DNA from: Macrostomum hystrix
Lineage: Eukaryota > Animalia > Platyhelminthes
Direction: 5' to 3'
DNA length: 64,000 bases
NCBI GenBank assembly: GCA_950097015.1
Contig: CATNEN010000032.1
Location: 1,178,001-1,242,000, forward strand
The notes under the pieces were generated by a model, which had not been told where the DNA came from, ran no database searches, and worked only from the letters and a program-made list of their open reading frames with translations. Of the stretch, positions 25,052 through 61,500 are shown piece by piece; positions within the stretch are counted from its first letter, which is position 1; each line of letters starts with the position of its first letter. The position numbers and the translations under genes are program-made.

Positions 25052-28000
25052 CTAGGACACAACTCGGGTCTCGCTGACGACTTTCTTGACCTCTTCTGGC
25101 GTCGCCTCCTTGTTGCTGAAGCTGCAGCGGATCTCGCGACCGTGTCGTCCCATCACCGGCCTGAAGTTGTCCACCATTGGCCGCTTCTTGGTCTTGTCAA
25201 AGAAGGTCTTTGTGAACTTCAGCAGCTGAAAGATGCAGTGAATGGTTCGCGTGTGTACCGGGTCAGTGTGTCTCGGGCTGTAAGAACTCCAAAACAAATA
25301 TTCACGCAGTGTCAGTCAGTTACCAGGTCTTTGCGGATCTTCATGGCCTCGGTGAAGATGTGCCACTGCGCCACCGGGTTGCAGCCGGGGGTGGTGAAGG
25401 CGCCGTCGTAGTTCACGAAGCGGTGCAGGCTCTCAGGCAGCAGATCGCGGAGCTGCAGCTCGACTGTCTCCACGTCTATTGGGTGCAATGGGAAACTGAT
25501 GTGCACCCGCTGTGGAATGGATTGCTAGCCTATGCGTGGCTGGTAGATGTGATGGAATGGATTGCTAGCCTATGCGTGGCTGGTAGATGTGATGGAATGG
25601 ATTGCTAGCCTATGCGTGGCTGGTAGATGTGATGGAATGGATTGCTAGCCTATGCGTGGCTGGTAGATGTGATGGAATGGATTGCTAGCCTATGCGTGGC
25701 TGGTAGATGTGATGGAATGGATTGCTAGCCTATGCGTGGCTGGTTGATTGGATGAATGGATTGCTAGTCGATTCAAACAATTGCTCACTCTTTGCCGAGA
25801 CCACAGCAGCGCCGTGGGACACCGGGACGTACAGCTCAGTCAAGTTCGACAGGACCTGGGCGATCACGTGACCAGCCCAGCCGTCGTGATCCTTGGGCTG
25901 GAAAATGAATTGGTGATGTGAAAATACGAGCGATTTTTTATGGAAAACCAGCCGGCAGTGAGCAGTGAGGAGGAGGCGGTGAGCAGTGAGGAGGCCAGCA
26001 GGCAGTGAGCAGAGAGGAGGCCAGCAGGCAGTGAGCAGTGAGGAGGAGGCGGTGAGCAGTGAGGAGGCCAGCAGGCAGTGAGCAGAGAGGAGGCCAGCAG
26101 GCAGTGAGCAGAGAGGAGGCCAGCAGGCAGTGAGCAGTGAGGAGGCCAGCAGGCAGTGAGCGGTGAGGAGGCCAGCAGGCAGTGAGCAGTGAGGAGGCCA
26201 GCAGGCAGTGAGCAGTGAGGAGGCCAGCAGGCAGTGAGCAGTGAGGAGGCCAGCAGGCAGTGAGCAGTGAGGAGGCCAGCAGGCAGTGAGCGGTGAGGAG
26301 GCCAGCAGGCAGTGAGCAGAGAGGAGGCCAGCAGGCAGTGAACGCGGCAGTCGTAGAGCTCAGGCGCCGCAGTGCCGCACCTGCATGGGGTGGATGAAGC
26401 CAGCCAGCACGGTGATGGCGTCGGTGGTGTCGATGGCCTTGGTCATGCTGAGCCCCAGCCGCTTGCACACAATGTGCACCTCCATTGGGGTGGGCAGTGG
26501 CTTGCCGGTGGCGTCGAACAGGCGGTGCTCGCTGCCGACGCCCTTCTCTACGTTGGCGGCGCTGCCCCAGTGGAAGTGGAACTGGAAGCAGTTGTAGGTG
26601 CCGTTCAGGTGGCCTCCGGTCACCGTCAGGTCGGCGCTGTTCACGGCGTCGGCTTGGACTGCGGGCGCGGCGGGGTTTGGTGGAAGTTTTTGACCGTTCT
26701 GATGCGTGACTTAAGATCCGTTACTTTTGATCCGTTACTTCTGGTCAGTTACTTCTGATCCGTTACTTCTGGTCCCTCTTTCTGATCCGTTATTTTTTTC
26801 CGTTACTTCGGCCCCGTTACTTCTTATAGGTTGTAACTGATCCGCTTATTATGCTTTCGTTTCTTTAGAATGGTCACAAATTTATTCTGTTCATTATTTC
26901 GTAGTTCTTTTAACCGAACTTACGTTACTTTTGGGTGTGATTGGCCGAGCGTTTAACGCGTCTTCCTCTCATGCCAAGGTCCCTGAGCTCGCGGATAGAA
27001 GGCTTGGGGGCTTGTCGTGCAGTTTACGCCCTTAAGGCCTTAATGTGAAAGTGTACACTGTCCGACGATGAGAAGGTCAGGGCAGATATGTACACACCTG
27101 TGTGAGTGAGTGCCTTTTACTTCTTGTTCGTCACTTTAGCAGCTTAATATGAGCTTGGCATTTTCAAAGTTTTCAAAGCTTCAAAAGCAGCTTACTCGAG
27201 TGTCCGTTATTCTTGACAATGAACTTTCTTTCGTCGTGCCAGCCCTTGCCTAGCTGGATCTTCTTCAGCTTCGCCGATTTGGCCTTGCAAACCTTCAGCT
27301 CGATGTTGATCGGCGAGGGCCTGTTGGCTGGCAGGTCCCTGCAGTAGGGGCTGATCTGCCACCATTTTTGCGGAGCTGGGAGGCAATTTTGATGGAATCG
27401 GTTGTTAAGAGGAAATCGCTAATTAGGTGACGAGGCATTGTGATAGCTTCTAAAAGGCATAGTTACTCGCTCACCGAATTCGCAGTGCGGTCCGTGCGCA
27501 TTCTCGTAGTCGTGATTGTAAACGAAGGACTTGGTGTCGCATGGAATGACTAAACAGATGGGTTTGTAATTGAAGGTAAGAATAATTAAAGTTATTCTAA
27601 TTCGCCATGCATTCCTTCGAATTCTTATCCATCGAATTCCAATCCATCGAATTCCAATCCATCGAATTCCAACCCATCGAATTCCAACCCATCGAATTCC
27701 AATCCATCGAATTCCAATCCATCGAATTCCAATCCATCGAATTCCAACCCATCGAATTCCAACCCATCGAATTCCAACCCATCGAATTCCAATCCATCGA
27801 ATTCCAACCCATCGAATTCCAACCCATCGAATTCCAATCCATCGAATTCCAACCCATCGAATTCTAATCCATCGAATTTCAATCCCTCGAATTTCAATCC
27901 CTCGAATTTCAATCCCTCGAATTCCAATCCATCGAATTCCAATATCTCCTCAAACGATACTCACTGGCGCAGTCAATTTTCCAAGAGGAGTCCAGGTCGT

Positions 28001-30621
28001 ACAGATGGGTCTCTGCCCAGCGCTCCAGCTTCAACCGGAACTCGCTGTGCCTGATGTAGTGTCGCGGATGCTTCGCCAACTGCAATCGGACGAAGCCGTT
28101 CTGCATCATCACTGCCTTGAAGCTCGAGGCGCTCTTGAACTCCTGGCTACCATCAGACTTAGACATCATGACGAAGTGGTCGGCAACGGTGTTGAGGTAG
28201 TAACCTGGCTTCTCCGCTGACTCGATGGACACAGCCCGGGGGTTGCCATTCAGGGCAGGCGTCACGAACTTGAACCTGGTGCCATTGCTGGTGCTGATGG
28301 TGGCCACCACGTCTGGGCCGGCCTTCACGGAGTACTTCGGATAGTTCAGCGATCGCAGATGGAACTCGCCGTCACAGACGTCCAGATGAAAGACTTTGTC
28401 TTATTGGTTCGTTGGGATATCAGGTAGTGGGACTTTAGGATTTGGTTATTTGAAACTGGCATGTCAGAACTCGGGATATTTAAAATTGTGATTTTTTAAA
28501 TTGGGATATTTGAAATTGGGATATTTGAAATTGGGATATTTGAAGTTGGGATATTTCAAATGGGATATTTGAAATTGGGATATTTGAAGTTGGGACATTC
28601 GAAATTGGGATATTTGAAATTGGGATATTTGATATTGGGATATTTGAAAATGGGATATTTGAAATTGGGATATTTGAAATTGGGATATATGAAATCGGGA
28701 TATTTGAAATTGGGATATTTGAAATTGGGATATTTGAAATGTTAATGCCGAATACTGGCTTATCAGCAAACGGGAATGCGGAAAACGGTGCATATTAATT
28801 CACCCACCGCTCGTGCAGATGAAGCTGAACATGGTATCCTCCTTGTACAGATTGGTGTCTGTCCATCTGATCAACTTCAGCTGAAATGACTGATGCCTCA
28901 GGTAGTGCCTAGTGTGAGTAGTACTCTTGAACCTGAAGTAGCCCTCAATGGCCTTCTCCAGAATGAAGGAGGCCTCCCTCTTAAACAGCTCGCTATTGTC
29001 GTTCTTCAACAGTTTCACAGTGTAATCCACGTTGCACAGAAAATATCCAGGAAATGACAGCGATTCAAGCGAGATGCCGCCAGCTGTGCCGTCCAGAGCG
29101 GCGCGCTCAACAAATCTGGTGCCATTGCCAATGGCGATGCCCATCACGCCGCTGCCCTTCTGGGTCAGGTAGTAGGTTGGGTAGTTGTACGAGTTGAAGA
29201 TCACCGCATTGGGACACATTCCTGGAATAGAAAATTTGGATTTTGTGAGAATTCATGTCTAATCCCAGTTGCAATCTGCTGCACACACTGCAATCTGCTG
29301 CACACACTGCAATCTGCAGCACACACTGCAATCTGCAGCACACACTGCAATCTGCAGCACACTCTGCAATCAGCTGCACACACTGCAATCTGCAGCACAC
29401 ACTGCAATCTGCAGCACACACTGCAATCTGCAGCACACTCTGCAATCAGCTGCACACACTGCAATCTGCAGCACACTCTGCAATCTGCTGCACACACTGC
29501 AATCTGCAGCACACACTGCAATCTGCAGCACACACTGCAATCTGCAGCACACTCTGCAATCAGCAGCACACACTGCAATCTGCAGCGCACACTGCAATCA
29601 GCAGCACACACTGCAATCTGCTGCACACACTGCAATCTGCTGCACACACTGCAATATGCAGCACACTCTGCAATCTGCTGCACACACTGCAATATGCAGC
29701 ACACACTGCAATCTGCAGCACACACTGCAATCTGCAGCACACTCTGCAATCAGCTGCACACACTGCAATCTGCAGCACACACTGCAATCTGCAGCACACA
29801 CTGCAATCTGCAGCACACTCTGCAATCAGCTGCACACACTGCAATCTGCAGCACACTCTGCAATCTGCTGCACACACTGCAATATGCAGCACACACTGCA
29901 ATCTGCAGCACACACTGCAATCTGCAGCACACTCTGCAATCAGCTGCACACACTGCAATCTGCAGCACACACTGCAATCTGCAGCACACACTGCAATCTG
30001 CAGCACACTCTGCAATCAGCTGCACACACTGCAATCTGCAGCACACTCTGCAATCTGCTGCACACACTGCAATCTGCAGCACACACTGCAATCTGCAGCA
30101 CACACTGCAATCTGCAGCACACTCTGCAATCAGCAGCACACACTGCAATCTGCAGCGCACACTGCAATCAGCAGCACACACTGCAATCTGCTGCACACAC
30201 TGCAATCTGCTGCACACACTGCAATCTGCTGCACACACTGCAATATGCAGCACACTCTGCAATCTGCTGCACACACTGCAATATGCAGCACACACTGCAA
30301 TCTGCTGCACACACTGCAATCTGCAGCACACACTGCAATCTGCTGCACACACTGCAATCTGCTGCACACACTGCAATCAGCAGCACACACTGCAATATGC
30401 AGCACACACTGCAATCTGCTGCACACACTGCAATCTGCTGCACACACTGCAATATGCTGCACACACTGCAATATTCAGCACACAGCACTGGCAGTAGCCA
30501 GTTTTGCACTTAATAAATTGCGCAGATGATTCATCATTAAAATCAAGACTTGCTTACTTTCAGACAGGGCAACTTGCGCGCCAGTCACCAGAATTAGCGC
30601 TGCCAGGATAGCAACTTGCAT
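25052..30621 (-). CDS. Secreted alpha-carbonic anhydrase A with two N-terminal AbfB/CBM42-like domains; 9 exons (30621-30558, 29221-28808, 28399-27965, 27549-27475, 27375-27196, 26658-26381, 25897-25789, 25475-25324, 25225-25052), 626 aa
   Basis: Signal peptide MQVAILAALILVTGAQVALSE, AbfB-like repeats (SLESLSFPGYFL...REASF, RHYLRHQ...KEDTMF), and CA motifs RPSPINI, NNGHS, QFHFHWG, GSEH, MEVHIV, YDGAFTTPGC, DNFRPV. All introns GT-AG and in phase; exon lengths identical to gene C. Confidence 0.88.
25515..25770. repeat. 40-bp minisatellite in CA-A intron 7 (inverted counterpart at about 42350-42650)
   Basis: ATTGCTAGCCTATGCGTGGCTGGTAGATGTGATGGAATGG tandem units. Confidence 0.9.
25950..26340. 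repeat. 26-bp minisatellite in CA-A intron 6 (inverted counterpart at about 41780-42170)
   Basis: GCAGTGAGCAGTGAGGAGGCCAGCAG units; the ORFs 25938-26468 (-) and 41651-42181 (+) translate identically. Confidence 0.9.
26933..27114 (+). mobile_element. tRNA-derived SINE-like element, copy 3 (internally shortened) in CA-A intron 5
   Basis: TGGCCGAGCGTTTAACGCG (A-box-like)...CCAAGGTCCCTGAGCTCG...AAGGCTTGGGGGCTTGTCGTG...GTCAGGGCAGAT...CACCTGTGTGAGTGAGTGCC. Confidence 0.7.
27615..27945. repeat. 15-bp minisatellite (CATCGAATTCCAATC) in CA-A intron 3
   Basis: Tandem array. Confidence 0.93.
28470..28742. repeat. 15-bp minisatellite (GGGATATTTGAAATT) in CA-A intron 2
   Basis: Tandem array. Confidence 0.93.
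29272..30482. repeat. 19-bp minisatellite (CACACACTGCAATCTGCAG) in CA-A intron 1
   Basis: Tandem array of about 63 copies; explains the many Cys/His-rich ORFs at 29100-30530. Confidence 0.95.
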
Positions 30622-31389: not shown

Positions 31390-33800
31390 AATTCTATTCC
31401 TTCATTCAGTGTGCATAGATTAGCAATCCATTCTAATTCTTCATTCAGTGGGCATAGATTAGCAATCCATTCTAATCCTTCATTCAGTGGGCATAGATTA
31501 GCAATCCATTCTATTCCTTCATTCAGTGGACATAGATTAGCAATCCATTCTATTCCTTCATTCAGTGGGCATATATTAGCAATCCATTCTATTCCTTCAT
31601 TCAGTGGGCATAGATTAGCAATCCATTCTATTCCTTCATTCAGTGGGCATAGATTAGTAATCCATTCTATTCCTTCATTCAGTGGGCATAGATTAGCAAT
31701 CCATTCTATTCCTTCATTCAGTGGGCATAGATTAGCAATCCATTCTATTCCTTCATTCAGTGGGCATAGATTAGCAATCCATTCTATTCCTTCATTCAGT
31801 GGGCATAGATTAGCAATCCATTCTATTCCTTCATTGATCAGTGGGCATAGATTAGCAATCCATTCTAATCCTTCATTCAGTGGGCATAGATTAGCAATCC
31901 ATTCTATTCCTTCATTCAGTGGGCATAGATTAGCAATCCATTCTATTCCTTCATTGATCAGTGGGCATAGATTAGCAATCCATTCTAATCCTTCATTCAG
32001 TGGGCATAGATTAGCAATCCATTCTATTCCTTCATTCAGTGGGCATAGATTAGCAATCCATTCTATTCCTTCATTCAGTGGGCATAGATTAGCAATCCAT
32101 TCTATTCCTTCATTCAGTGGGCATAGATTAGCAATCCATTCTATTCCTTCATTCAGTGTGCATAGATTAGCAATCCATTCTATTCCTTCATTCAGTGTGC
32201 ATAGATTAGCAATCCATTCTATTCCTTCATTCAGTGTGCATAGATTAGCAATCCATTCTATTCCTTCATTCAGTGTGCATAGATTAGCAATCCATTCTAT
32301 TCCTTCATTCAGTGTGCATAGATTAGCAATCCATTCTATTCCTTCATTCAGTGTGCATAGATTAGCAATCCATTCTATTCCTTCATTCAGTGTGCATAGA
32401 TTAGCAATCCATTCTATTCCTTCATTCAGTGGGCATAGATTAGCAATCCATTCTATTCCTTCATTCAGTGAGCATAGATTAGCAATCCATTCTATTCCTT
32501 CATTGATCAGTGGGCATAGATTAGCAATCCATTCTATTCCTTCATTGATCAGTGGGCATAGATTAGCTATCCATTCTATTCCTTCATTCAGTGGGCATAG
32601 ATTAGCTATCCATTCTAATCCTTCATTCAGTGGGCATAGATTAGCAATCCATTCTATTCCTTCATTCAGTGGGCATAGATTAGCAATCCATTCTATTCCT
32701 TCATTCAGTGGGCATAGATTAGCAATCCATTCTATTCCTTCATTCAGTGGGCATAGATTAGCAATCCATTCTAATCCTTCATTCAGTGGGCATAGATTAG
32801 CAATCCATTCTATTCCTTCATTCAGTGGGCATAGATTAGCAATCCATTCTATTCCTTCATTCAGTGGGCATAGATTAGCAATCCATTCTATTCCTTCATT
32901 CAGTGGGCATAGATTAGCAATCCATTCTAATCCTTCATTCAGTGGGCATAGATTAGCAATCCATTCTATTCCTTCATTCAGTGGGCATAGATTAGCAATC
33001 CATTCTATTCCTTCATTCAGTGGGCATAGATTAGCAATCCATTCTATTCCTTCATTCAGTGGGCATAGATTAGCAATCCATTCTATTCCTTCATTCAGTG
33101 GGCATAGATTAGTAATCCATTCTATTCCTTCATTCAGTGGGCATAGATTAGCAATCCATTCTATTCCTTCATTCAGTGGGCATAGATTAGCAATCCATTC
33201 TATTCCTTCATTCAGTGGGCATAGATTAGCAATCCATTCTATTCCTTCATTGATCAGTGGGCATAGATTAGCTATCCATTCTATTCCTTCATTGATCAGT
33301 GGGCATAGATTAGCAATCCATTCTATTCCTTCATTCAGTGTGCATAGATTAGCAATCCATTCTATTCCTTCATTGATCAGTGGGCATAGATTAGCAATCC
33401 ATTCTATTCCTTCATTGATCAGTGGGCATAGATTAGCAATCCATTCTTTTCCTTCATTCAGTGGGCATAAATTAGCAATCCATTCTATTCCTTCATTGAT
33501 CAGTGGGCATAGATTAGCAATCCATTCTATTCCTTCATTCAGTGGGCATAGATTAGCAATCCATTCTATTCCTTCATTCAGTGGGCATAGATTAGTAATC
33601 CATTCTATTCCTTCATTGATCAGTGGGCATAGATTAGCAATCCATTCTATTCCTTCATTCAGTGGGCATAGATTAGCAATCCATTCTATTCCTTCATTCA
33701 GTGGGCATAGATTAGCAATCCATTCTATTTCTTCATTCAGTGGGCATAGATTAGCAATCCATTCTATTCCTTCATTCAGTGGGCATAGATTAGCAATCCA
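31390..33800. repeat. 39-bp minisatellite (CATTCAGTGGGCATAGATTAGCAATCCATTCTATTCCTT) with 42-bp variants, about 61 copies
   Basis: Tandem array between the CA-A start and the CA-B end. Confidence 0.97.
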
Positions 33801-34073
33801 TCATTGAAATCGTGAAATCGTAGCTCAGAACCTCTTAGCAATGTTCAATTTTGCGTTCAGTTCGCGTTCGGAAGGCAAAAAAAGCCAAGCTTACTAAACA
33901 ACAAGTTTAAAATAAAAGGAAAAGAGTTTCTAGGTATATTTCACCGCCACCGGCTTCGAACAAGCTCCGAGTTCAAAGTCTCAAATAGCTAAATCTTAAT
34001 CTTCAAGGCTCTACTAGAAGCTGAGCAGAGAGCAGCAATGATCTCAGTTAGTCTCAGGAGGGCCAGCGGCTTC

Positions 34074-37000
34074 CTATTCAGCCGGCTCTTCGATTGGCTC
34101 ATCGAACTCGCCAGCCGAGTCCATCAGTGAAGCCGAGTTGCCGAAGCTGCAGCGAATCTCGCGACCGTGCAGGCCCGTCACCGGCCTGAAGTTGTCCACC
34201 ATCGGCCGCTTCTTGGCCTCATCAAAAAATACCGACGTGAACTTCAGCATCTGCGGGGCGAGAGGGATGAGGACCTTGGAATCTGCCTGACTGTCTCACC
34301 TGTGTATCACACCCTCTGACTGTCTCACCTGTGTAGTACACCCACTGTCTATCTCACCTGTGTATCACACCCTCTGACTGTCTCACCTGTGTAGTACACC
34401 CACTGTCTATCTCACCTGTGTATCACACCCTCTGACTGTCTCACCTGTATAGTACACCCACTGACTATCTCACCTGTGTCTCACCTGTGTTTGTCAACCC
34501 CTTGTCTCACAACCCTTGCCTGTCTCTCGCCTCTCACCCCTCAGTCCTCAGCCTTAGCGCAAGCGCAGCAAGTATTTCTCACCAGCCGTTTGTCCACCCT
34601 AACGGGTTCGGTGAAAAGGTGCCACTGGACCACCGGGTTGCAGCCGGGTGTGGTTAGCGCGCCGTCGTAATTCACAAAACGATCGACCTTCTCCGGCAGT
34701 AGGTCGCGGAGCAGCAACTCAACAGGCGCGCCTAACATAGCAAAAGCAGGTGCTCATAAGTAAGGCCTTCTCAATCCAAAAAAATATTGACCGTGATCAT
34801 TGCTGCTTACGATCATCTGCGGTTGGCTCGCTTCCGTGAGGCACCGGTGCGTACAGGTGGCTCATGTCCGACAGAGCCTGGCCCAGTAGTCTACTAGTCA
34901 CAGTTTCCGGCTCCATATCCTGCAGTGGTAGTAGGGTCGGATTTAGTGAATTTTAGTGAAATTAGTGAATTTAGTGATTTAGTGCACAGTCATTAAGGCT
35001 CTTATGCCAGGCGAGGGGTTGTGTGTGCAGCGGAGGTGTGCAGTAATTAGGAATCTTATATCAAGTAAGGTGTTGAGCGTGTATAGTTACCCTCTGCGGC
35101 ACAATGAACGCGCCCAGCACAGCAATGGCATCCGGGGTGATCACGGCCTGTTGGAAGCTCATGTCCAGCCGCTTGCACACAATGTGCACCTCCATGGGGG
35201 TCGGCACCAGATTGCCGGCGGCGTCAAAAAGGCGGTGCTCACTGCCGATGCCCTTATCCATGTTGGCCGAGCTGCCCCAGTGCAGGTGGAACTGGACACA
35301 GTTGAATGTGGTCTTCAGGTGGCCTCCAGTGACTCTCAAGCCTTCGCTGTTCAAAGCGTCCGCCTGGACTGCAGTTTGGGAGAATAGGAGCTTGGCCTGT
35401 TCTAGTGCTTTAGACTGGTCTGTTCTAATCTAACAATAGACCCATGAGATCAATTAACCCATAACAACAATGGATCCGTGAGAACAATGGATCGGTGAGA
35501 ACAATGGATCCGTGAGAACAATGGATCCGTGAGAACAATGGATCCGTGAGAACAATGGACCCGTGAGAACAATAGATCTGTGAGAACAATGGATCCGTGA
35601 GAACAATGGACCCGTGAGAACAATGGATCCGTGAGAACAATAGATCCGTGAGAACAATGGACCCGTGAGAACAATGGACCCGTGAGAACAATGGATACGT
35701 GAGAACAATGGATCCGTGAGAACAATGGACCCGTGAGAACAATGGATCCGTGAGAACAATAGATCCGTGAGAACAATAGATCCGTGAGAATAATCAACCC
35801 GTGAGAACAATGGATCCGTGAGAACAATGGATCCGTGAGAATAATCAACCCATGAGAACAATGGACCCGTGAGAACAATGGATCCGTGAGAACAATAGAT
35901 CCGTGAGAACAATGGACCCGTGAGAACAATGGATCCGTGAGAACAATGGATCCGTGAGAACAATGGATCCGTGAGAACAATGGACCCGTGAGAACAATGG
36001 ATCCGTGAGAACAATGGACCCGTGAGAACAATGGACCCGTGAGAACAATGGATCCGTGAGAACAATGGATCCGTGAGAACAATGGATCTGTGAGAACAAT
36101 AGATCCGTGAGAACAATAGATCTGTGAGAACAATGGATCCGTGAGAACAATGGACCCGTGAGAACAATGGATCCGTGAGAACAATAGATCCGTGAGAACA
36201 ATGGACCCGTGAGAACAATGGACCCGTGAGAACAATGGATCCGTGAGAACAATGGATCCGTGAGAACAATGGACCCGTGAGAACAATGGATCCGTGAGAA
36301 CAATAGATCCGTTAGAACAATAGATCCGTGAGAATAATCAACCCGTGAGAACAATGGATCCGTGAGAACAATGGATCCGTGAGAATAATCAACCCGTGAG
36401 AACAATGGACCCGTGAGAACAATGGATCCGTGAGAACAATAGATCCGTGAGAACAATGGACCCGTGAGAACAATGGATCCGTGAGAACAATGGATCCGTG
36501 AGAACAATGGATCCGTGAGAACAATGGACCCGTGAGAACAATGGATCCGTGAGAACAATGGACCCGTGAGAACAATGGACCCGTGAGAACAATGGATCCG
36601 TGAGAACAATAGATCCGTGAGAACAATAGATCCGTGAGAACAATGGACCCGTGAGAACAATGGACCCGTGAGAACAATGGATCCGTGAGAACAATAGATC
36701 CGTGAGAACAATGGACCCGTGAGAACAATGGATCCGTGAGAACAATGGATCCGTGAGAACAATGGACCCGTGAGAACAATGGATCCGTGAGAACAATAGA
36801 TCCGTGAGAACAATGGACCCGTGAGAACAATGGACCCGTGAGAACAATGGATCCGTGAGAACAATAGATCCGTGAGAACAATAGATCCGTGAGAACAATG
36901 GACCCGTGAGAACAATGGACCCGTGAGAACAATGGATCCGTGAGAACAATAGATCCGTGAGAACAATAGATCCGTGAGAATAATCAACCCGTGAGAACAA

Positions 37001-37648
37001 TTTCCCAGTTCCCACTGGTAAATGGTCAAGACAGCATTTGTAATAAAAAGCAGCCCTTACTTGAATGCCCATTGTTCTTCACAAAGAACTTTGTCCTGCC
37101 CAGCCAGCTGGCGCTGAACTGCAGCGGCCGGAGTGCGGGCGACTTGGACTGACAGGCGCTGAGGCCAATGTTGATTGGCGATGGTCGGTTGGCCCTCGAA
37201 TCGGCGCACTTTGCATTGATTTGTGCCCAATTGGCTGGTGCTGCATAGTCAGGAAGTCTTTGAAAAATCACAACTTGGCTTATTTAGTTTGGAATCTAGA
37301 GCAATTTTCAACTCACCAAACTCGCAATGTCCACCGTGCTGGTTCTCGTAGGCTCGCTGGTACACAAACGACTTTGAGGTACAGCTTCGCACGCCTGGGT
37401 TCCATAAAATAGTAAAAACTAGGCGAAAATTAAATGTTCTCCAAGGTGAGGTTGGGGTGCCAACAATGAAACATCACTTACAACACTTAGTAAACTCAAG
37501 CGTACAAACTCTGCGCTCAAAATACCTTTGTACACAAGTACGTGCATGTTCATAATTAGAACACATCAATTTGATTGGATCTTTCCAACTTACTTCTGGC
37601 CATCGAGGCTCCAGAACAGGACAGGATGAGCAGTAACCAGAGTAGCAT
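34074..37648 (-). CDS. Secreted alpha-carbonic anhydrase B without AbfB domains; 7 exons (37648-37594, 37394-37317, 37240-37061, 35368-35091, 34919-34811, 34731-34583, 34250-34074), 341 aa
   Basis: Signal peptide MLLWLLLILSCSGASMAR, then SCTSKSFVY...HCEF, RPSPINI, NNGHS, QFHLHWG, GSEH, MEVHIV, YDGALTTPGC, DNFRPV. Exon sizes 180/278/109 match genes A and C. Confidence 0.88.
34288..34480. repeat. About 29-bp alternating minisatellite (CTGTCTCACCTGTGTATCACACCCTCTGA-like) in the last CA-B intron
   Basis: Tandem units. Confidence 0.85.
35460..37000. repeat. 17-bp minisatellite (CCGTGAGAACAATGGAT) in CA-B intron 3, about 90 copies
   Basis: Tandem array; explains the SHGSIVLTDPLF-type ORFs. Confidence 0.97.
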
Positions 37649-38862
37649 TGTGCTTCAGATTCCTCTATATATTGCCACCGTGAGCGGATTGCTGGTGTCT
37701 GCGTGGGCACTGTTTCCACTTTTATTTAGCCCCGCGAAAAAAACCGGTTCTATCTGAGAACCATTTTAGATCGCCCACCTCTACCTGACCCACCCGCCAA
37801 CTCACAGGGTGCACTTATAAGCAACCTTTCCGTGAGCAACCAATGGCATACAAAAGTTTCATGCTCACACAAGAGCACACATTATCAGCCAATGGGTTGG
37901 CGTAAATCGATTTAAAAAAACGAAACATGCTTGTTGCCGAGGATCTGGAGAAGCCAGTCCCTCTGCTGCGTCACTGTCAGTCTAGAGCTAAGCGCAGATA
38001 ATGGGGAAGGACCTGACAGGCAGGCAAGCATCGGGACCAACTCCCACAGACTGCCACGGGATCAAACAGATATGAGCACCTCAAAAACCGGTTCAAACTG
38101 GTAATTGCCAGCCCAATTGCCCGTAGGCATTATGCTAAGTAATATCAATACAGAAAATAAAGATACGCTGGTCGTTTTAATAGGCAGTTTTAATATTATC
38201 TAAAAACGCCCACTTACTTTTTTGAATGCAATAGTTTGCCTTTGCACATGTAATCCGGCACTTTCCATTTTAAGCTTTAGCTTGGCCAATCAGCTGCAAT
38301 ATGAGTTATATCTCTATTATACTGTTTCGTTTTCTTTCAAACAGAAAAGTTTAACTCATGCACGCGCATCACAGAAAGGCATTCTTAGCCTTGGGTGCGT
38401 CAGCAACCTGAAGTGCTGCTCAGAGCTGCCCGGGGCAGTGAAGGGTTAGGATAATATCCGTGGGATTTAGTAACTGAGCACAAATTAGTGAGCACGATCT
38501 GTCAGCTCTTGACAGTTTTGTGACAGCCATTGGTTCTCCGAAGTCGTTGAGGGCCCGATCCTCCCCGTACCCGCTCCACCGAGCGCAGCTGGCATTCGAA
38601 GCGGTGTAGCAGCGGTGCCAACATACGGCAAGCGACTGCGGATCTTCAGCTATAGGCTCCCAGTGGCTAGTTCTATGGCGTGCGAGCAGGCGGGATTCGA
38701 GAGGAAGAGGTCCCGTCCGGAGAGGTCCGGCTTCACCGGCAGGAGGCGGTTTAGAATTTAAGGCGCATTGAAACGGATTTCATAAATTCACAACAGATCG
38801 CCCAGAGCTGCTGAGAGCGGAGCCACTATTGTTTCACAGACCCGACTGTTTGATCACTGGAA

Positions 38863-41800
38863 ATGCGTCAGGTCCTGCTGCTGACGGCCCTCCTAATGGC
38901 CTGCATTCAGGCCTCAGTGGCTGCCAGTGAGTCGCCTTTCAATTAATTCTGACCACAGAAGATTTGTATTTATTCGCCATCCTATTTATCAACTCCCAAC
39001 TCATTCCAGGAATGTGTCCCAATGCGGTGATCTTCAACTCTTATAACTACCCAACTTACTACCTGACCCAGAAGGGAAACGGGCAGATTGGCATCGCCCT
39101 TGGCAATGGCACCAGGTTTGTTGAGCGCGACGCTCTGGACGGCACAAAGGACGGCGTGTCGCTCGAGGCCCTATCCCAGCCCGGATATTTCTTGTGCAAC
39201 GTGGACAACCTTGTCAAACTGTTGAAAAACGACAATAGCGAGCTGTTCAAGAGGGAGGCCTCCTTCACTCTGGAGAAGGCCGACGAGGGCTTCTTCAGGT
39301 TCAAGAGTACTACTCACACTAGGCACTACCTGAGGCATCAGTCGCTGCAGTTAAAGCTCATGAGCTGGGTGGACACGAACCTGTTCAAGGGGGACTCGGC
39401 TTTCGGCGTTGTGTGCACCAGCGGTGAGTGCCGAGCAAAATTTTGCGGCGCATAAGCAGAGAGCGCTTTGGTAAGAGCTTAGCACAATGCCCCACACACC
39501 CAAACTCAGACAAGCTGTTCAAGTTGGACGTCTGCGACGGCGAGTTCCAGCTGAAGTCCCTGAACTACCCGAAGTACTCGGTCAAGGCCGACGTCAATGT
39601 CATCTCCGCCATCAGCACCAGCAATGGAACCAGGCTGAAGTTCGTGACGCCCGCTCTGAATGGCAACCCCCGAGCTGTGTCCATCGAGTCAGCTGAGAAA
39701 CCCGGACACTTCCTCAACACCGTGGCAGACCACTTCGTCATGATGTCCAAGCTGGACAACACTCAGGAGTTCAAGAACGCCTCAACCTTCAAGGTGGTCA
39801 TCATGAGCAACGGCTACGTGCGTCTGCAGTCTCTGCAGAATCCGCGTCACTACATCAGGCACAGCGAGTTCCGGCTGAAGCTGGAGCGCTGGGCAGAGAC
39901 CCATCTGTACGACCTGGACTCCTCTTGGAAAATTGACTGCGCCAGTGAGTATGAGCCTATAGCTCATGAGAGTATGGGGCTTAGATCTATTTGCATTCCG
40001 AAATAAGTGATCGAAACTATGTAGTGCAGAACCTTGAATGAAGCTTATGCAGTTGTCGCAACTGGACAAACACCGAAACGCTTAGAACAAGACCAACTAT
40101 TGACATACACTCACAGATTGCAAAAAACCGTTCAAAAACAAAGAAAACTTTCATGTCTAACTTGCTAGATCAGGCGAAAAATTGTTTAACATTTTTTTAC
40201 TTTGACGAGTGAATGTGCATGTTTTCAGTGGCCGTAAAAACTTTTTTATTTTATCAACGTAATTGCAGTCATTCCATGCGACACCAAGGCCTTCGTGTAC
40301 AACCATGACTACGAGAATGCACACGGACCGCACTGCGAATTCGGTAAGACCACTCCGCTTAAAGGCTGTCACAACAAGAGTGGCATCTGCAGGGCTGTCA
40401 CAACAAGAGTGGCATCTGCAGGGCTGTCACAACAAGAGTGGCATCTGCAGGGCTGTCACAACAAGAGTGGCATCTGCAGGGCTGTCACAACAAGAGCGGT
40501 ATCTGCAGGGCTGTCACAACAAGAGTGGTATCTGCAGGGCTGTCACAACAAGAGTGGTATCTGCAGGGCTGTCACAACAAGAGTGGCATCTGCAGGGCTG
40601 TCACAACAAGAGTGGCATCTGCAGGGCTGTCACAACAAGAGTGGCATCTGCAGGGCTGTCACAACAAGAGTGGCATCTGCAGGGCTGTCACAACAAGAGC
40701 GGTATCTGCAGGGCTGTCACAACAAGAGTGGTATCTGCAGGGCTGTCACAACAAGAGTGGTATCTGCAGGGCTGTCACAACAAGAGTGGTATCTGCAGGG
40801 CTGTCACAACAAGAGTGGTATCTGCAGGGCTGTCACAACAAGAGTGGTATCTGCAGGGCTGTCACAACAAGAGTGGTATCTGCAGGGCTGTCACAACAAG
40901 AGTGGTATCTGCAGGGCTGTCACAACAAGAGTGGTATCTGCAGGGCTGTCACAACAAGAGTGGTATCTACAGGGCTGTCACAACAAGAGTGGTATCTGCA
41001 GGGCTGTCACAACAAGAGTGGTATCTGCAGGGCTGTAGTTAATTGCTAAATTAATTGCTTTCATCATAAATAAAACTCAAACTAGAAGACTGACTTGTTT
41101 CAACACTCCAGCATTGTTCACAATCTCCAACTCATCCCACAGCCCCCGCCAAGTGGTGGCAGCTCAGCCCGTTCTGTAAGGACCTGCCAGCCAACAGGCC
41201 GTCCCCGATCAACATCGAGCTGGGCCTGTGCAAGGCCAAGTCGCCGAAGCTGAAGAAGATCCAGCTAGGCAAGGGCTGGCACGACGAGAGAAAGTTCATC
41301 ATCAAGAACAACGGACACTCGAGTGAGCAGTCGTTGTATTCTATTGAAATGTTGCTCTAATTCTGTCTGACTATAGTAGATTCGTGAGAAGAAGTAACGG
41401 ATCTTAAGTAACGCAATCAGAACGGTCAAAAACTTCCACCAAACCCCGCCGCGCCCGCAGTCCAAGCCGACGCCGTGAACAGCGCCGACCTGACGGTGAC
41501 CGGAGGCCACCTGAACGGCACCTACAACTGCTTCCAGTTCCACTTCCACTGGGGCAGCGCCGCCAACGTAGAGAAGGGCGTCGGCAGCGAGCACCGCCTG
41601 TTCGACGCCACCGGCAAGCCACTGCCCACCCCAATGGAGGTGCACATTGTGTGCAAGCGGCTGGGGCTCAGCATGACCAAGGCCATCGACACCACCGACG
41701 CCATCACCGTGCTGGCTGGCTTCATCCACCCCATGCAGGTGCGGCACTGCGGCGCCTGAGCTCTACGACTGCCGCGTTCACTGCCTGCTGGCCTCCTCTC

Positions 41801-43110
41801 TGCTCACTGCCTGCTGGCCTCCTCACCGCTCACTGCCTGCTGGCCTCCTCACTGCTCACTGCCTGCTGGCCTCCTCACTGCTCACTGCCTGCTGGCCTCC
41901 TCACTGCTCACTGCCTGCTGGCCTCCTCACTGCTCACTGCCTGCTGGCCTCCTCACCGCTCACTGCCTGCTGGCCTCCTCACTGCTCACTGCCTGCTGGC
42001 CTCCTCTCTGCTCACTGCCTGCTGGCCTCCTCTCTGCTCACTGCCTGCTGGCCTCCTCACTGCTCACCGCCTCCTCCTCACTGCTCACTGCCTGCTGGCC
42101 TCCTCTCTGCTCACTGCCTGCTGGCCTCCTCACTGCTCACCGCCTCCTCCTCACTGCTCACTGCCGGCTGGTTTTCCATAAAAAATCGCTCGTATTTTCA
42201 CATCACCAATTCATTTTCCAGCCCAAGGATCACGACGGCTGGGCTGGTCACGTGATCGCCCAGGTCCTGTCGAACTTGACTGAGCTGTACGTCCCGGTGT
42301 CCCACGGCGCTGCTGTGGTCTCGGCAAAGAGTGAGCAATTGTTTGAATCGACTAGCAATCCATTCATCACATCAACCTGCCACGCATAGGCTAGCAATCC
42401 ATTCATCACATCAACCAGCCACGCATAGGCTAGCAATCCATTCCATTACATCTACCAGCCACGCATAGGCTAGCAATCCATTCCATCACATCTACCAGCC
42501 ACGCATAGGCTAGCAATCCATTCCATTACATCTACCAGCCACGCATAGGCTAGCAATCCATTCCATCACATCTACCAGCCACGTACAGGCTAGCAATCCA
42601 TTCCATCAATCACATCAACAAGCCACGCATAGGCTAGCAATCCATTCCACAGCGGGTGCACATCAGTTTCCCATTGCACCCAATAGACGTGGAGACAGTT
42701 GAGCTGCAGCTCCGCGATCTGCTGCCTGAGAGCCTGCACCGCTTCGTGAACTACGACGGCGCCTTCACCACCCCCGGCTGCAACCCGGTGGCGCAGTGGC
42801 ACATCTTCACCGAGGCCATGAAGATCCGCAAAGACCTGGTAACTGACTGACACTGCGTGAATTTTTGTTTTGGAGTTCTTACAGCCCGAGACACACTGAC
42901 CCGGTACACACGCGAACCATTCACTGCATCTTTCAGCTGCTGAAGTTCACAAAGACCTTCTTTGACAAGACCAAGAAGCGGCCAATGGTGGACAACTTCC
43001 GGCCGGTGATGGGACGACACGGTCGCGAGATCCGCTGCAGCTTCAGCAACAAGGAGGCGACGCCAGAAGAGGTCAAGAAAGTCGTCAGCGAGACCCGAGT
43101 TGTGTCTTAA
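38863..43110 (+). CDS. Secreted alpha-carbonic anhydrase C with two N-terminal AbfB/CBM42-like domains; 9 exons (38863-38926, 39010-39423, 39510-39944, 40269-40343, 41143-41322, 41461-41738, 42222-42330, 42687-42838, 42937-43110), 626 aa
   Basis: Signal peptide MRQVLLLTALLMACIQASVAA; same exon lengths (64/414/435/75/180/278/109/152/174) and phases as gene A; the three Zn-ligand His are intact. Confidence 0.9.
40363..41036. repeat. 29-bp minisatellite (GGGCTGTCACAACAAGAGTGGCATCTGCA) in CA-C intron 4
   Basis: Tandem array, about 23 copies. Confidence 0.95.
41390..43110 (+). repeat. Right arm of the ~1.7 kb inverted duplication
   Basis: Matches 25052-26730 in reverse complement. Confidence 0.92.
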
Positions 43111-46151: not shown

Positions 46152-49100
46152 TGTTGTGCAGTTGATTAATGCACGTACATAGTTCGTACATGTACACCTC
46201 TGATATCGATTGGCGCAGAATATATATAGTCCAATAACTGAGAGCCAACTTGGCGTGAAAGTTTCGGATACTAACTTGGCTGACTCGCTACTATTCATTT
46301 ACAACATTGGCATCGCAAGCTCAAGCGAACACCCACCCCAATAAGCCGGGGTCGGAGTAGACTGAAGTGAAGTGACTGCAAGCCTGCCAAGCCAAGCGTA
46401 AACAACAGCGCCAAACTGCAAAAGTGCAAACTGAAACATGACGAGTGACAGCAACTCAGCAGAAGCGCCGCGGATCAGCGTATCGCCGCCGGATCAATTC
46501 CTGCCGCAGCCGGGCCGACCGGCGAGGCCGTGGAAAGAGTGGAAGGCCCTCTTTGAGAACTACTTACTTGCGGCCGGCTACGACACTTTGCCGGAAGCGA
46601 GGAGGCGCGCGCTGTTGCTGCACTGCCTTGGCGCGGAAGGGCAGCGAGTCTTTGCGGCTGTGGCAGCAACGAAGAGGCCGAGTCCGACAGAACTCGCGGC
46701 GACAGTCGCGATTCTGGACGAGCAGTTCGGAGCCAAAGTCAACGTGGTGGCGGAGCGCCACAAGTTTCGGCAGCGCAGTCAGCGTCCGGGTGAAAAGATT
46801 GCGGACTTCGTGGCGGCTCTGTATGCTCTGGCTGGCTCATGTGAGTTCCGCGACATGATGGAAGAAATGATCCGCGACCAGATCGTGGAGAAGGTCAGCG
46901 ACAGGCGAATTCGAGAGCGCTTGCTGATCGAGGACGGCCTGACGCTGCAGAAGGCAGTGACGCTGAGCCAGCAATGGGAGACCAGCATCGCTGAGGCCAG
47001 CGCGATAGAGACGGAAGGCGCAGCCGCGGCCGGAGCACAGCTGGAAGAAGAGGTGAAGAGAGTCCGACTACAACCAGACAGGAAGAACACAGGACAAGGG
47101 CGACCAGATCGAGAGTCATGCTCCAAGTGCGGAGGCGGGCACAACAGACGAGCCCGGTGTCCAGCTGAAGGCAAGAGTTGTCATGTCTCCGGGAAGGCGA
47201 ACCATTTCGGCCGGATGTGCAGGTCGCAGGGCGCCAAGGTCGCCGAGGTCATGGACGAGAGCGGCCAAGCCGTGTACATGGTGCGCGGCGCCTCCAGTCC
47301 CGACATCCGCTGCCGGCTGAAGGTGCATGGCATCTGGCTGAATCTGCTTGTAGACTCGGGAGCCAAGGTGTCCATCCTGTCAGAGAGGACCTTCAGGAAG
47401 CTCGGAAACCGGTCGCCACTCCAGCCGTCGACCAAGAAACTCATCGCGTACAACGGCAAGGCAATCGATGTCGTCGGCGAGGCGGTGCTGTCCGTCAGCT
47501 ATCGCGGCCAGCTGGTGCCATTTTTCTGCTTTACCGTGGTACGGCAAGGCTCCGACATCATGGGAACGGATCTGATGCAGCACCTCAGCTTCCAGGTGGT
47601 GGACAAGGACGGCGACCTCGTGCGCACAGTCGAAAAAACGGCAGAGCTACCGGTCTGGCTGGCCGAGCGCTTCAAGCCACTGACGCAGGGACTCGGGCGG
47701 ATCCGAGGATTCGAGCACCGGCCCAGGCTGAACCCCGCCGTGCCCCCGGTGGCGCAATCGCTACGCCGCATCCCACTTAGCATCAAAGACAAAGTCCAGG
47801 CGGAGATTGACCAGCTGCTGGAGGATGACATCATCGAGGAGATCCAGGCTTCAGAGTGGATTTCGAACCTGGTGATCGTCCCGAAGCCTGATGGCAAAAT
47901 CAGGGTCTGCAATGACCTCAGGTGCCCAAACAAGGCCATAGTTCCGGATAAGCAGCCGCTGCCGACATTCGAGGAGCTGACAACGGAGTTCAAGGGCTCG
48001 ACCGTGTTCACTAAGCTGGATTTAAATTCTTCGTATCTGCAGTTGGAGCTAGCAGAAGATAGGCGGGACTTAACGGCCTTCATTACGGAGAAAGGGCTGT
48101 ACCGGTACAAGCGCGTATGCTATGGCCTAAACAGCGCCCCGGCGGCCTTCCAGAAAGTTCTCAGCAAGATTCTCCATGGCTGTTCCGGGACGCTGCACTA
48201 CATCGACGACATAGTGGTGCACGCTGCCAACGAGGCGGAGCACCTGCGGCGGCTCACGACAGTGCTGGACAAGCTGCTCGCCCATGGCGTCACGCTCAAC
48301 GCCTCAAAGTGCCAGTGGGCTGCAGAGACAGTGCAGTTCCTGGGCTACATCGTCTCCGCGAGAGGACTTCAGCCGATGCAGTCTAACGTTGAAGACATCG
48401 AGGCGGTGCCGGAGCCCCAGAACGCCGAGGCAGTGGCCTCATTTCTGGGAATGGTTAAATTCTATTCCAACTTTCTGCACAACCTGTCCGACATCGCCGA
48501 GCCGCTGCTGCTGCTACTTCGCAAAGAGCAGCCCTGGAACTGGACAACAGATTGCCAAAAGGCCTTTTGGAGGCTCAAGAAGATGGTGGTGTCCCCAACA
48601 TGCTTGCGATTCTTCAGTCCCGACGACAAGATCATCGTGGCCTGCGACAGCTCCGCGCACGCTCTGGGGGCCGTGCTGATGCAAGACGACAGCGCCGGGG
48701 TTCGAAGACCAGTCGCTTTCGCGTCAAGGACCCTGTCAGCGACCGAGCGCAAGTACTCCGCATCAGAGAGAGAGGCTCTCGCGTGCATCTTCGCGTGCGA
48801 GAGATGGCACTATTTCCTGTTCGGCCGGAGATTCGAGCTGCACACGGACCACCAGGCTCTGACGACGCTGCTGACGGCTCAAGGCAGCGGCCACCGGCCT
48901 CTGCGGCTTCATCGATGGGCCGACCGCCTGCTCGCGTACGACTTCCAAGTCTGCCACGTTCCTGGCAAGAAGAACATCGTGCCAGATTTTTTGTCGCGCC
49001 ACGGCGCTCTCGAAGGAAAATGCCCAAGGCAAAGCGAAGAGGACTCGACCGAGCTCCAAGTGAATGCCGTACTGCTATCGGGCGCGCTGGAGATTGTCAG

Positions 49101-58574: not shown

Positions 58575-61500
58575 TCATTGAAAGCTTCGATCTGGCTACA
58601 TGTAGGACAGTCGTGATGGTCAGCCCTAAATCTTGGATTACGACTGAGCACATCTGCGTTGACATGCTTGACTCCTGCACGATGCTCAACAGAGAAGTCA
58701 TATTCAGCCAGCCGCTCTAGGGGTGTTTGACTCACGCTGAAGTCATACACCTCGATCGTAGCTAGCCATTGTGCTAGCATAACTGTGGAATCCTTCTTAG
58801 TGTGTAGCCATTGTAGGGCGGCTGCGTCTGAGCGCACAAGAAACTTGCGGTCCAGCAGATATGTTCGAAAATGTTCCAGCATGATGACAAGTCCAAGTAA
58901 TTCACGCATCGTCGCGCAGTAATTCCTCTGCGATTGTGTGAATTTTTTCGAAGCATACGCAACGACGTGCTCCTGACCACCTGGACCTTCTTGTGACAAA
59001 ACGCCGCCAACTCCTTCAAGCGAGGAGTCGCAATCTAAGATGAAGAGCCCAGCTGACGGACTGAGGTCAGGGTACGCAAGGATTGGAGGCGCGCACAGAT
59101 TTGCTTTCAGCTCTTCGAAAGCTTTGTCATGCTGCTCCAGCCAGCAGAATGTCGACGAGCCTTTAGCTAGCGCATACAGCGGCGATGCGATCACGGAAAA
59201 ACGTTGCACGAACTTTCTATAGTAGTTCGCGAATCCTAGGAACGCTAATAATTGCTTTTTATCTGATGGTTTGCACCAATTCTTTACCGCGTCGATCTTT
59301 GCTGGGTCGGCTTCAATTCCTTGAGCTGAAACAACGAAGCCTAAGAACCGAACGCGATCCTTGAAAAGCTCACATTTAGCTGGTTTAATTTTTAAGTTTG
59401 CCTTTTTAAGTTGCCAGAGGACAAGCGCCAAGTGGACGATCATTTCGTCATTGTCCCTGGCCTTTATGATTATATCGTCAAGATAGATAAGACTCACGCG
59501 CATGAGTAAAGGCCTGAACACCCTGTGCATCAACTTGGCAAAGTTTGCCGGTGCTGTCTTGATGCCAAAGGGTACGACCTTCCATCGGAAAGTGCCCTGG
59601 GGGCATGAGAATGCTGTGATGTCTCGATCGCATTCGCGAATACCTACTTGCCAATAAGCTGCGGTGAGATCTAAACTGGAAAATATTTTCGACTCTGCTA
59701 GGCTATCAAACGATTCTTCTATTAGTGGTAAAGGAAAGGTGCATGGCTTGATTACTTTGTTGACCTGTCGATAGTCAATACACAGGCGTTGGGAACCATC
59801 TTTTTTCCGAACTAAGACTATTGGAGAGGACCACTCAGAGTCGCACTCTTCAATGATTCCTTGATTGACTAACTGGCTTATATGTTTGTCTAAAAATTCC
59901 TTCTGCGAGGGGGTCGTGCGCCTAGATGGCTGCCAGATAGGGCGGCAAGCCGACTCCTGCAGCTCAATTGTCATCTCATGTACATGTGTTTTTCCTAGGT
60001 CTGTTTCGCTAAGCGATATCTGACTACTAAAATAGTTCAGCAGCTTAAGTGTTACTGTCAGCTGGTTCTTCGATAGGGTGGTCTCATTGAGCTTAAACTG
60101 TGTAGTCAGCCAAGATGCTATTCCTGGGTCTGGGTCAGGGAGTTTTGCAAGCTTGGCTCCAAGATCTTCAGAGCTGCTGATGGAGAAATCTTTCTCAGAT
60201 ACAGGCGTGACAGAAATTGAATCCCCATGTTCAAGGCTCCTAAAAGAGGCGATTTCCTGCCCCATGGAGATCGATGATGGCTGGTCACTACTGTTTAATA
60301 GGCGCACGAGTACATGGTTAGTGGTGCTTACACTGTCAACAGAGTGTGCTACGAACAGCTCTGAGTCCCGGCAGAAGAGTTTAGTGCCTAGAACACCCTG
60401 AGTACCAGGATCAGCACCTGAGACCCGGCTTGGCACCATAGTCTCTGACCTGGGGAGTAGCTGCACGTTGCAGGCGGCTGTGACTCTGCGTGCCTGGAAA
60501 ACTCCCTTGTCACCTTCAATGACTGGTACAGGCTCTCCAGCTACAGTTACCTGACCATCAGCAACAAGCAAGTTAACGCTAAAACTTCTCATAAAGTCTA
60601 TTCCTAACAGCAAATCTGAAACCTGACCTTCCGTTACCAGGAAAACGTGGGTCTGCTTCTTCTTTCCAAGTTTGACCTCACAGTGAAGCGTGCCCAAAAT
60701 CTGTGACGAGGTTCCATTGAATGCTGTCGCGGCTTGGTATTGTCTAGCAGGGACAAATTTGTGATTTATGGGATCATTTGCGATCAGCTGGTCCTTGATT
60801 TTAGTTCCAACGACACTAGCATTGCAACCTGAATCAAGGCAAGCGATGTACTTATCGTTACCTATTTCTAACTGCACGAACATGCTGGACTCGACTCTAG
60901 CCTCGTTAGTCAGCGTTTGATCACAACGGACAGGGAATGGATAGCGGCAGACTCCTATCGCCTTATCTCGGTTGTGAGCTGGGTCCGTTTGACGCCAGAA
61001 CTGTACGATTGTGCCTACCAGTTGGCGCCGATTGGCTAACTGTTGTAGCTCATTGTCTAAGCTGGATTGATGAAAGAAGATGGAGCCTGGTATTTGGCTT
61101 GGTTGGATGAAGCCAAATCCAGTCTTCAAAGCCGTGATGGTACCTGTCTCCATCACCTGACTCTGAGAAACGATGGTGTTTGGTCTTCCACCACCTGTCC
61201 CGCCGAAGGGCAATGGCTGTGGGCAGTCCGCGGTATGATGATCACCAGCACCGCATCGGTTGCAGGACCTGCGCATCTTGCGAGATTGGTGACTTTTTTG
61301 GGTCCTATAACTATCCATTTTGTGTGTCTGTGGTCCTTGGTCACTGGTAGAATTAAGATTTGCATGCCCTTTTAATTGGGACTCTGTCTGGAAGGCTGGC
61401 GAAGAAGCCTGATTTTGCTGAAGCCGTTTCTCTAGTTCACGAACACGGGCTTCCAGCTCTGCTGTTCTGTCAGGAGCTGCTGTCCTTACAACAAGAGGAA

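Follow-up and report, generated by a model that had tools for sequence, protein, structure and literature searches.

A probable case of exon shuffling in Macrostomum: neighbouring carbonic anhydrase genes with and without two phase 1-1 AbfB exons

RESULTS

Three neighbouring carbonic anhydrase genes in two layouts

Here, we analysed a stretch of 64,000 nucleotides (nt) from the flatworm Macrostomum hystrix (GenBank assembly GCA_950097015.1, contig CATNEN010000032.1, positions 1,178,001 to 1,242,000 of the forward strand; hereafter the window, numbered from its first base), in which three paralogous genes, A, B and C, code for predicted secreted alpha-carbonic anhydrases (CAs). The proteins of A and C consist of a signal peptide, two AbfB domains and the CA domain, in this order, and each AbfB domain is encoded by one exon. 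In B, the stretch that holds both AbfB exons in A and C is a single intron of phase 1, which separates the signal exon from the first CA exon, as the original prediction had proposed. B sits between A and C, which form an inverted pair flanking it. The interval 34074-39944, to which that prediction referred, runs exactly from the last base of the stop codon of B to the last base of the second AbfB exon of C.

Four AbfB-like open reading frames (ORFs) and three CA cores were first located by a six-frame self-comparison of the window. The gene models were built by reading the window DNA and then checked by script for splice sites, phases and stops; all introns of A, B and C are of the GT-AG type and no internal stop codon was found. 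Gene C (plus strand, 38863-43110) has nine exons and encodes 626 amino acids (aa). Exon 1 (38863-38926, 64 nt) codes for the signal peptide and ends in phase 1. Exon 2 (39010-39423, 414 nt) holds the first AbfB domain, AbfB1 (PF05270, E-value 3.5e-18), and exon 3 (39510-39944, 435 nt) the second, AbfB2 (PF05270, E-value 1e-16). They are followed by the first CA exon, exon 4 (40269-40343, 75 nt, reading Cys...FVY...HCEF and homologous to exon 2 of B), and by exon 5, also of the CA domain (41143-41322, 180 nt). Exons 2-5 of C, like those of A, are in phase 1 at both ends. The CA core with the motifs FHFHWG and EVHIV is encoded by exon 6 (41461-41738, 278 nt, phase 1-0); exon 7 (42222-42330, 109 nt, phase 0-1), exon 8 with the TTPGC motif (42687-42838, 152 nt, phase 1-0) and exon 9 (42937-43110, 174 nt, TAA stop included) complete the gene.

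Gene A (minus strand, 30621-25052) has nine exons of sizes identical to those of C and likewise encodes 626 aa. Its signal exon (30558-30621, 64 nt, phase 1) precedes the exons of AbfB1 (28808-29221, 414 nt) and AbfB2 (27965-28399, 435 nt), exon 4 (27475-27549, 75 nt) and exon 5 (27196-27375, 180 nt). Exons 6-9 (26658-26381, 25897-25789, 25475-25324 and 25225-25052) span 25052-26658 and are, together with their introns, 98-100% identical to those of C.

Gene B (minus strand, 37648-34074) has seven exons and encodes 341 aa. The signal exon (37594-37648, 55 nt, end phase 1) is spliced over intron 1 (37395-37593, 199 nt, phase 1) directly to exon 2 (37317-37394, 78 nt, phase 1-1), the first CA exon, whose peptide reads SVRSCTSKSFVY...HCEF and whose homolog in A and C is exon 4 of 75 nt. 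It is followed by exon 3 (37061-37240, 180 nt, phase 1-1), exon 4 with the CA core (FHLHWG, EVHIV; 35091-35368, 278 nt, phase 1-0), exon 5 (34811-34919, 109 nt, phase 0-1), exon 6 (34583-34731, 149 nt, phase 1-0) and exon 7 (34074-34250, 177 nt, TAG stop included). Compared with their counterparts in A and C, exons 3-7 of B are equal in phase throughout and equal in size for 180, 278 and 109 nt, with 149 against 152 nt and 177 against 174 nt in the last two. Both this conservation downstream and the direct junction of the signal exon of B with its first CA exon had been anticipated from the letters of the sequence and hold in the script-checked models. Since sizes and phases repeat across three paralogs and exon borders coincide with domain borders, the layout is not a product of chance.

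The AbfB domains are symmetric single-exon modules

All database, family and structure searches were made exon by exon with the exons of A, B and C as queries, while the joined coding sequences were used in local scripts for frame checks, identities, the ratio of nonsynonymous to synonymous substitution rates (dN/dS), trees and one phmmer run against fetched proteins. PF05270 matches nearly all of each AbfB exon in A and C with E-values of 1e-15 to 1e-20, and all four exons score 57.7-74.2 bits against a cut-off of 22.8. The 414- and 435-nt exons span positions 3-136 and 28-137, respectively, of the 137 positions of the family model. Each exon encodes two Cys near its borders, one at 1-7 residues from the 5' edge and one at 1-2 residues from the 3' edge, and both are invariant in the alignment. 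Thus the Pfam borders and the script-derived phases bear out the proposal that each AbfB domain of A and C is one exon with phase 1 on both sides and a Cys near each end. Both domains evolve under purifying selection (dN/dS between A and C of 0.24 for AbfB1 and 0.19 for AbfB2). Intron 1 of B, in the same phase, is flanked by exons homologous to exons 1 and 4 of A and C, and its acceptor lies at most one codon from the acceptor of their exon 4.

The modules resemble the AbfB/CBM42 family (PF05270; PDB 3KMV, 3AKF), given their scores far above the Pfam cut-off and a CBM42 chain as the nearest solved structure (3KMV, E-value 3e-11 for the AbfB2 exon of C). They differ from it in that no glycoside hydrolase partner accompanies the domain in A and C, and in that they form a set specific to an animal lineage, in which a Cys pair marks the ends of the domain; sugar binding is predicted from family membership.

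The carbonic anhydrase part and the state of gene B

PF00194 matches single exons of A, B and C with 49-52 bits against a cut-off of 27 bits, and their relative P0001, an ortholog of A and C introduced below, scores 147 bits. All three genes carry FHFHWG or FHLHWG together with EVHIV, GSEH, NNGHS and TTPGC. In these motifs we take the zinc-ligand His residues, the proton-shuttle His (in NNGHS), Glu106 and Thr199 to be present, numbered as in CA II; the Cys of TTPxC is typical of extracellular CAs. The PF00194 matches, the zinc-ligand and catalytic-type motifs, this Cys and the N-terminal signal peptide suggest that A, B and C are extracellular-type alpha-CAs. The best named matches are vertebrate CA4-like proteins and the closest solved structures are CA2 and CA7; A and C differ from such enzymes by their two N-terminal carbohydrate-binding modules. 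The translations of A, B and C show no hydrophobic tail at the C-terminus, which argues against a glycosylphosphatidylinositol (GPI) or membrane anchor.

Elsewhere in the genome, three tandem alpha-CA genes on contig 2 (C2:6616583-6627322) consist of apparently intron-free ORFs of 317-356 aa, each with a signal peptide. They give the top Pfam CA matches of the genome (177-183 bits) and share 27-28% identity with the group of A, B and C.

Is the clean absence of two exons in B an artefact of a truncated pseudogene or of a wrong gene model? B is indeed the most divergent of the three copies, with a protein identity to A and C of only 61% and a faster evolution (dN/dS 0.31 against C, at a dS near saturation, compared with 0.14-0.24 between A and C). 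However, its seven exons with canonical splice sites join to an uninterrupted frame of 341 aa with a signal peptide, FHLHWG, EVHIV, NNGHS, GSEH and TTPGC are all retained, the dN/dS of 0.31 speaks against decay, and the protein is collinear in alignment with annotated AbfB-less proteins of Macrostomum lignano, among them P0160. We therefore regard a pseudogene or a faulty model, named at the outset as what might undo the comparison, as highly improbable. As a part of the overall explanation given in the Discussion, and with the same confidence, B is probably a functional, faster-evolving paralog that never carried AbfB modules.

Both layouts occur in Macrostomum lignano

A search of 1.84 billion representative proteins with the AbfB2 exon of C led to P0001, a protein of 632 aa from a Logan contig of 2370 nt. 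By Pfam it has the order AbfB-AbfB-CA; it shares 71% identity with A and C and aligns over all eight of their exon junctions, and as its contig is too short for introns, the alignment confirms these junctions independently. Among the 150 best AbfB relatives of this search, a CA domain was present in only two proteins, both of the Macrostomum type. A profile made from P0008 (described below), P0001 and the exons of B and C retrieved relatives in M. lignano of both layouts: Mlig012818 g1-g3 are AbfB-AbfB-CA proteins of 625 aa, and Mlig032849 and Mlig030052 consist of a signal peptide and a CA domain (332 and 350 aa) without AbfB. The M. lignano protein PAA56185.1 (P0167, 625 aa) aligns to the model of C with one gap in all, leaving the eight junctions undisturbed.

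Both layouts are thus shared by M. lignano and by a transcriptome that is more distant. If the original description of exon shuffling "in view" is taken to mean a recent event, it does not stand, both for this reason and because B is only 61% identical to A and C. The change, most likely an insertion, is old: since both layouts are present in M. hystrix and in M. lignano, it predates the split of the two species.

All clean database proteins that combine AbfB with CA (P0001, P0159 and P0167-P0169) hold both AbfB domains, and no protein with one AbfB domain and a clean CA domain was found in the databases searched. P0008 (UniRef100_A0A1I8FLP6, M. lignano, 368 aa) is an AbfB-CA model with several out-of-frame stretches and without a Pfam match; a word search with it returned only itself and P0001. 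Given these frame errors, this faulty public model is not evidence of a short isoform.

Gain or loss of the AbfB exons

Whether the AbfB exons were gained by A and C or lost by B had been left open by the original prediction. In a tree of the CA domain, the AbfB-bearing A, C, P0001 and M. lignano P0159 form one clade (support 92/98), the M. lignano AbfB-less P0160 and P0161 are sister to it, and B falls outside both (97/95). The topology was unchanged with added outgroups, with support of 87/98 for the AbfB-bearing clade and 82/91 for the position of B. None of the outgroup CAs in these trees carries AbfB. Gain is the shortest history under either topology, that is, whether B stands alone or groups with P0160 and P0161, because it takes a single event on the branch that leads to the AbfB-bearing genes; loss costs one or two more steps. 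Trees and parsimony thus favour gain, with the AbfB-bearing CAs as one clade and B and the AbfB-less M. lignano genes outside, and an insertion is most likely the simplest history, in which B would keep an ancestral-type layout and not be the product of a deletion.

The relation between B and the AbfB-less genes of M. lignano is less simple. In the M. hystrix genome, the close matches of P0160 are A, C and B only, and in every exon it is nearer to A and C than to B; its gene lies on a different M. lignano contig from the AbfB-CA genes. Trees and approximately unbiased (AU) tests neither establish nor reject P0160 as a clear ortholog of B.

According to the opposite history, both AbfB exons were present in the gene from which A, B, C and the M. 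lignano genes descend, and B and P0160, jointly or separately, lost them by deletion with the frame intact. Removal of a phase 1-1 exon does not disturb the frame, the root of the tree is uncertain, so that a single loss would suffice if B and P0160 formed a clade, and the faster evolution of B (0.31 against 0.14-0.24) is what might follow a functional change. However, a gain would be needed anyway since the outgroup CAs are without AbfB, which leaves one or two extra steps to the loss, and AbfB-less forms are retained in both species. A permissive six-frame profile search of 33800-38862 also found no AbfB relic in or around B, including its 199-nt intron 1 and the upstream gap of 1.2 kb between B and C (best E-value 1.8). 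We consider a loss unlikely on these grounds, and gain by insertion remains the history that we prefer.

Double-AbfB genes as candidate donors

Are homologous AbfB exons present in other genes of M. hystrix, as the original prediction suggested looking for? A PF05270 scan of the genome gave matches in the window and in one cluster on contig 8 only (C8:4.175-4.209 Mb), where eight genes carry two AbfB-like domains each. A second search, with a profile of the window AbfB exons and the first domains of the contig-8 genes, added three tandem genes on contig 7 (C7:2570083-2577875) and one more on contig 8 (C8:3328705-3329528); Pfam's own AbfB model misses these four in a six-frame search. The genome thus contains at least 12 secreted double-AbfB genes with each domain in a single ORF, and they follow the same phase 1-1 design: all 12 first-domain exons that were read are phase 1-1, the single second-domain exon that was read is too, and a signal exon could be recognised in five of the eight genes of the contig-8 cluster, each time in phase 1. 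In the alignment, the terminal Cys pair is invariant across double-AbfB and CA genes and the exon borders fall at equal places. AbfB domain trees place all Macrostomum groups on one side of a branch with 100/98 support, apart from tunicate, cnidarian and other taxa. The double-AbfB family is a plausible donor of the AbfB modules, as far as phases, borders and cysteines allow a judgement.

Two more specific origins were rejected. A one-to-one descent of the first and second AbfB domains of the CA genes (CA-AbfB1 and CA-AbfB2) from the first and second domains of the double-AbfB genes (D1 and D2) does not agree with the scores, as both are slightly better against D1 and AbfB1 scores above AbfB2 on either profile. 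A recent horizontal transfer of AbfB was discarded as well, since the AbfB domains of the CA genes group with the other Macrostomum AbfB-like exons and share a common intron design with them.

Tandem-AbfB proteins, likewise secreted, of two marine invertebrates, XP_076806765.1 of Clavelina lepadiformis and XP_057315557.1 of Hydractinia symbiolongicarpus, have the plan of the double-AbfB genes, with a signal peptide and two to four AbfB domains. They differ by an identity of about 30%, and none has a CA domain.

The same exon design would also permit a different route, a 5' fusion, in which one recombination linked two phase-1 introns, the one behind the second AbfB exon in a double-AbfB gene and intron 1 in a CA gene, so that the signal exon of A and C would come from the AbfB gene. 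With a phase-1 signal exon, where identified, and phase 1-1 in all first-domain exons and in the one second-domain exon read of the double-AbfB genes, a single crossover would give the layout of A and C. However, C and P0159 have signal peptides similar to those of the AbfB-less CAs (z-scores of 5-6 against P0160 and 3-4.6 against B) and not to those of four double-AbfB genes (z-scores of -1 to 2.8), which favours insertion in place, and neither does CA-AbfB1 pair with D1 nor CA-AbfB2 with D2. A fusion therefore seems to us quite improbable, and an insertion into the intron of a CA gene that kept its own signal exon agrees better with the signal peptides.

Old duplication and recent gene conversion of A and C

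The history of A and C differs between their two halves. In exons 2-5 they are 83-93% identical, with a dS of 0.44-0.58 and a dN/dS of 0.14-0.24 (0.14 for exons 4-5 alone). The AbfB1 and AbfB2 trees both join C to the M. lignano gene and leave A outside (99/92 and 93/80), so that A and C were duplicated no later than the time at which the two species diverged. In contrast to exons 2-5, a tract that starts some 70 bp before exon 6 and reaches the stop codon is 98-100% identical between A and C with introns 6-8 included, at a dS of 0.018. This tract covers 25053-26726 on the minus strand in A and 41392-43109 on the plus strand in C; intron 6 is identical over 483 nt, and the tract ends at the stop codon, which is TAG in A and TAA in C. 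The identity of the 3' halves is due to recent gene conversion between the inverted copies, which also accounts for the pairing of A with C in the CA tree.

The signal exons of A and C, both of 64 nt and in the same phase, share only 19% aa identity, compared with 71% between C and its M. lignano ortholog P0159, and the DNA similarity of A and C begins just 7 nt before the AbfB1 exon. In A, the signal exon may result from a replacement or from very rapid divergence.

Repeats and mobile elements in the window

The longer introns of A, B and C are nearly all filled by minisatellites, each intron with its own, which have units of 15-40 bp in up to 90 copies; one intron array has an alternative reading with a 58-bp unit. 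The arrays lie at 25513-25767, 25948-26341, 27613-27943, 28447-28740, 29270-30484, 34287-34484, 35466-37001, 40364-41036, 41778-42171 and 42352-42649, and include 90 copies of 17 bp in intron 3 of B, 64 copies of 19 bp in intron 1 of A and 23 copies of 29 bp in intron 4 of C. Outside the conversion tract, introns of A and their homologs in C hold different arrays or none. Most of the space between the end of B and the start of A is taken by an array of 2.4 kb (31391-33801; 39-bp unit, 61 copies, 96% matches), which reads as an ORF of 810 aa and is surely no gene. Downstream of C, two coding regions of the long terminal repeat (LTR) retrotransposon type, with reverse transcriptase, RNase H and integrase, lie at 46435-50430 on the plus strand and 56058-62257 on the minus strand. 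The former has an uninterrupted frame of 1332 aa, and the latter has a weak match to a cold-shock domain in gag (E-value 4.8e-6, 26.8 bits against 27), just below the Pfam cut-off.

DISCUSSION

Based on the gene models, the relatives in M. lignano and the trees, we propose that the AbfB exons were shuffled into the phase-1 intron of an ancestral secreted CA gene, that they came from the double-AbfB family, and that this took place before the two species separated; we assign this explanation as a whole a probability of roughly 0.6. The ancestral alpha-CA gene would have had the layout of B, with a phase-1 signal exon followed directly by the first CA exon. AbfB/CBM42 beta-trefoil modules, probably drawn from the lineage-specific secreted double-AbfB genes of the same genome, would then have entered this intron by exon shuffling, before the lineages of M. 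hystrix and M. lignano parted. As each module is one exon with phase 1 at its start and its end, the reading frame would have been kept. The product would be a secreted enzyme with two N-terminal sugar-binding domains, as predicted for A, C and the M. lignano orthologs. Later, the fusion gene would have been duplicated, leading to the inverted pair that flanks B, and the 3' halves of the pair would have been converted recently. In this proposal, it is the direction of the change (gain), the donor family and an insertion in place rather than by 5' fusion that we infer.

Several observations weigh against the proposal. A clade of B with P0160 and P0161 receives AU p-values of 0.063 and 0.099. 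Very distant outgroups, on branches of 1-3 substitutions per site, root the CA tree, and B itself is a long branch. Parsimony is weak evidence here, as it counts just two AbfB-less lineages. The branching of CA-AbfB1, CA-AbfB2, D1 and D2 is weakly supported (81/51 and 81/36), and the AbfB domains of the CA genes are only 22-36% identical to those of the putative donor family. Similarity of signal peptides, finally, is a soft criterion. Accordingly, a single exon may have entered and been duplicated afterwards, or two exons may have entered jointly.

What might the fused protein do? The sequence features suggest a soluble secreted CA whose two lectin-like modules hold it on a glycan-rich surface, such as mucus, egg shell, or the secretion of adhesive or other glands. 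A more far-reaching idea is that the AbfB exons form an active, lineage-specific set of mobile modules that were put repeatedly into different secreted genes, and that they also act as cassette exons in A and C, giving isoforms with zero, one or two AbfB domains, as the original prediction had envisaged. We find this doubtful and put it forward as speculation. If true, it would offer a rare invertebrate system in which the donor family, the unmodified type of recipient and the product could be compared in one small genome.

AbfB-CA proteins are already present in UniProt and NCBI, without a name, and our literature search returned no paper that links AbfB with carbonic anhydrase in one protein or that names Macrostomum CAs or the Mlig gene identifiers. 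The AbfB-AbfB-CA order is an undescribed domain combination and a clear new example of a known process; it introduces no new principle. To our knowledge, most inferences of exon shuffling concern mosaic proteins of vertebrates that are old, and of which neither the donor nor the unmodified recipient survives. The M. hystrix genome, which is compact and well assembled, holds the product in A and C, the uninterrupted phase-1 intron in the paralog B and a possible donor family with an equal exon design, and a second species has both layouts. The locus is therefore well suited for teaching and for testing how targeting domains are gained by secreted enzymes.

The process itself, in which symmetric phase 1-1 modules are shuffled into the phase-1 introns that genes for secreted proteins contain, is the subject of Patthy's modularisation model, with the kringle, EGF and FN1 modules of the blood-clotting proteases as the classic examples. 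A and C resemble these cases in that one domain is one exon, that the introns on both sides are in phase 1, that the site lies directly behind the signal exon, that each module carries a terminal Cys pair, and that the type of module recurs in unrelated secreted genes. They differ in their components and in their setting: here an AbfB/CBM42 beta-trefoil appears to have entered an alpha-CA, in a free-living flatworm, and a paralog with the uninterrupted intron stands between both products.

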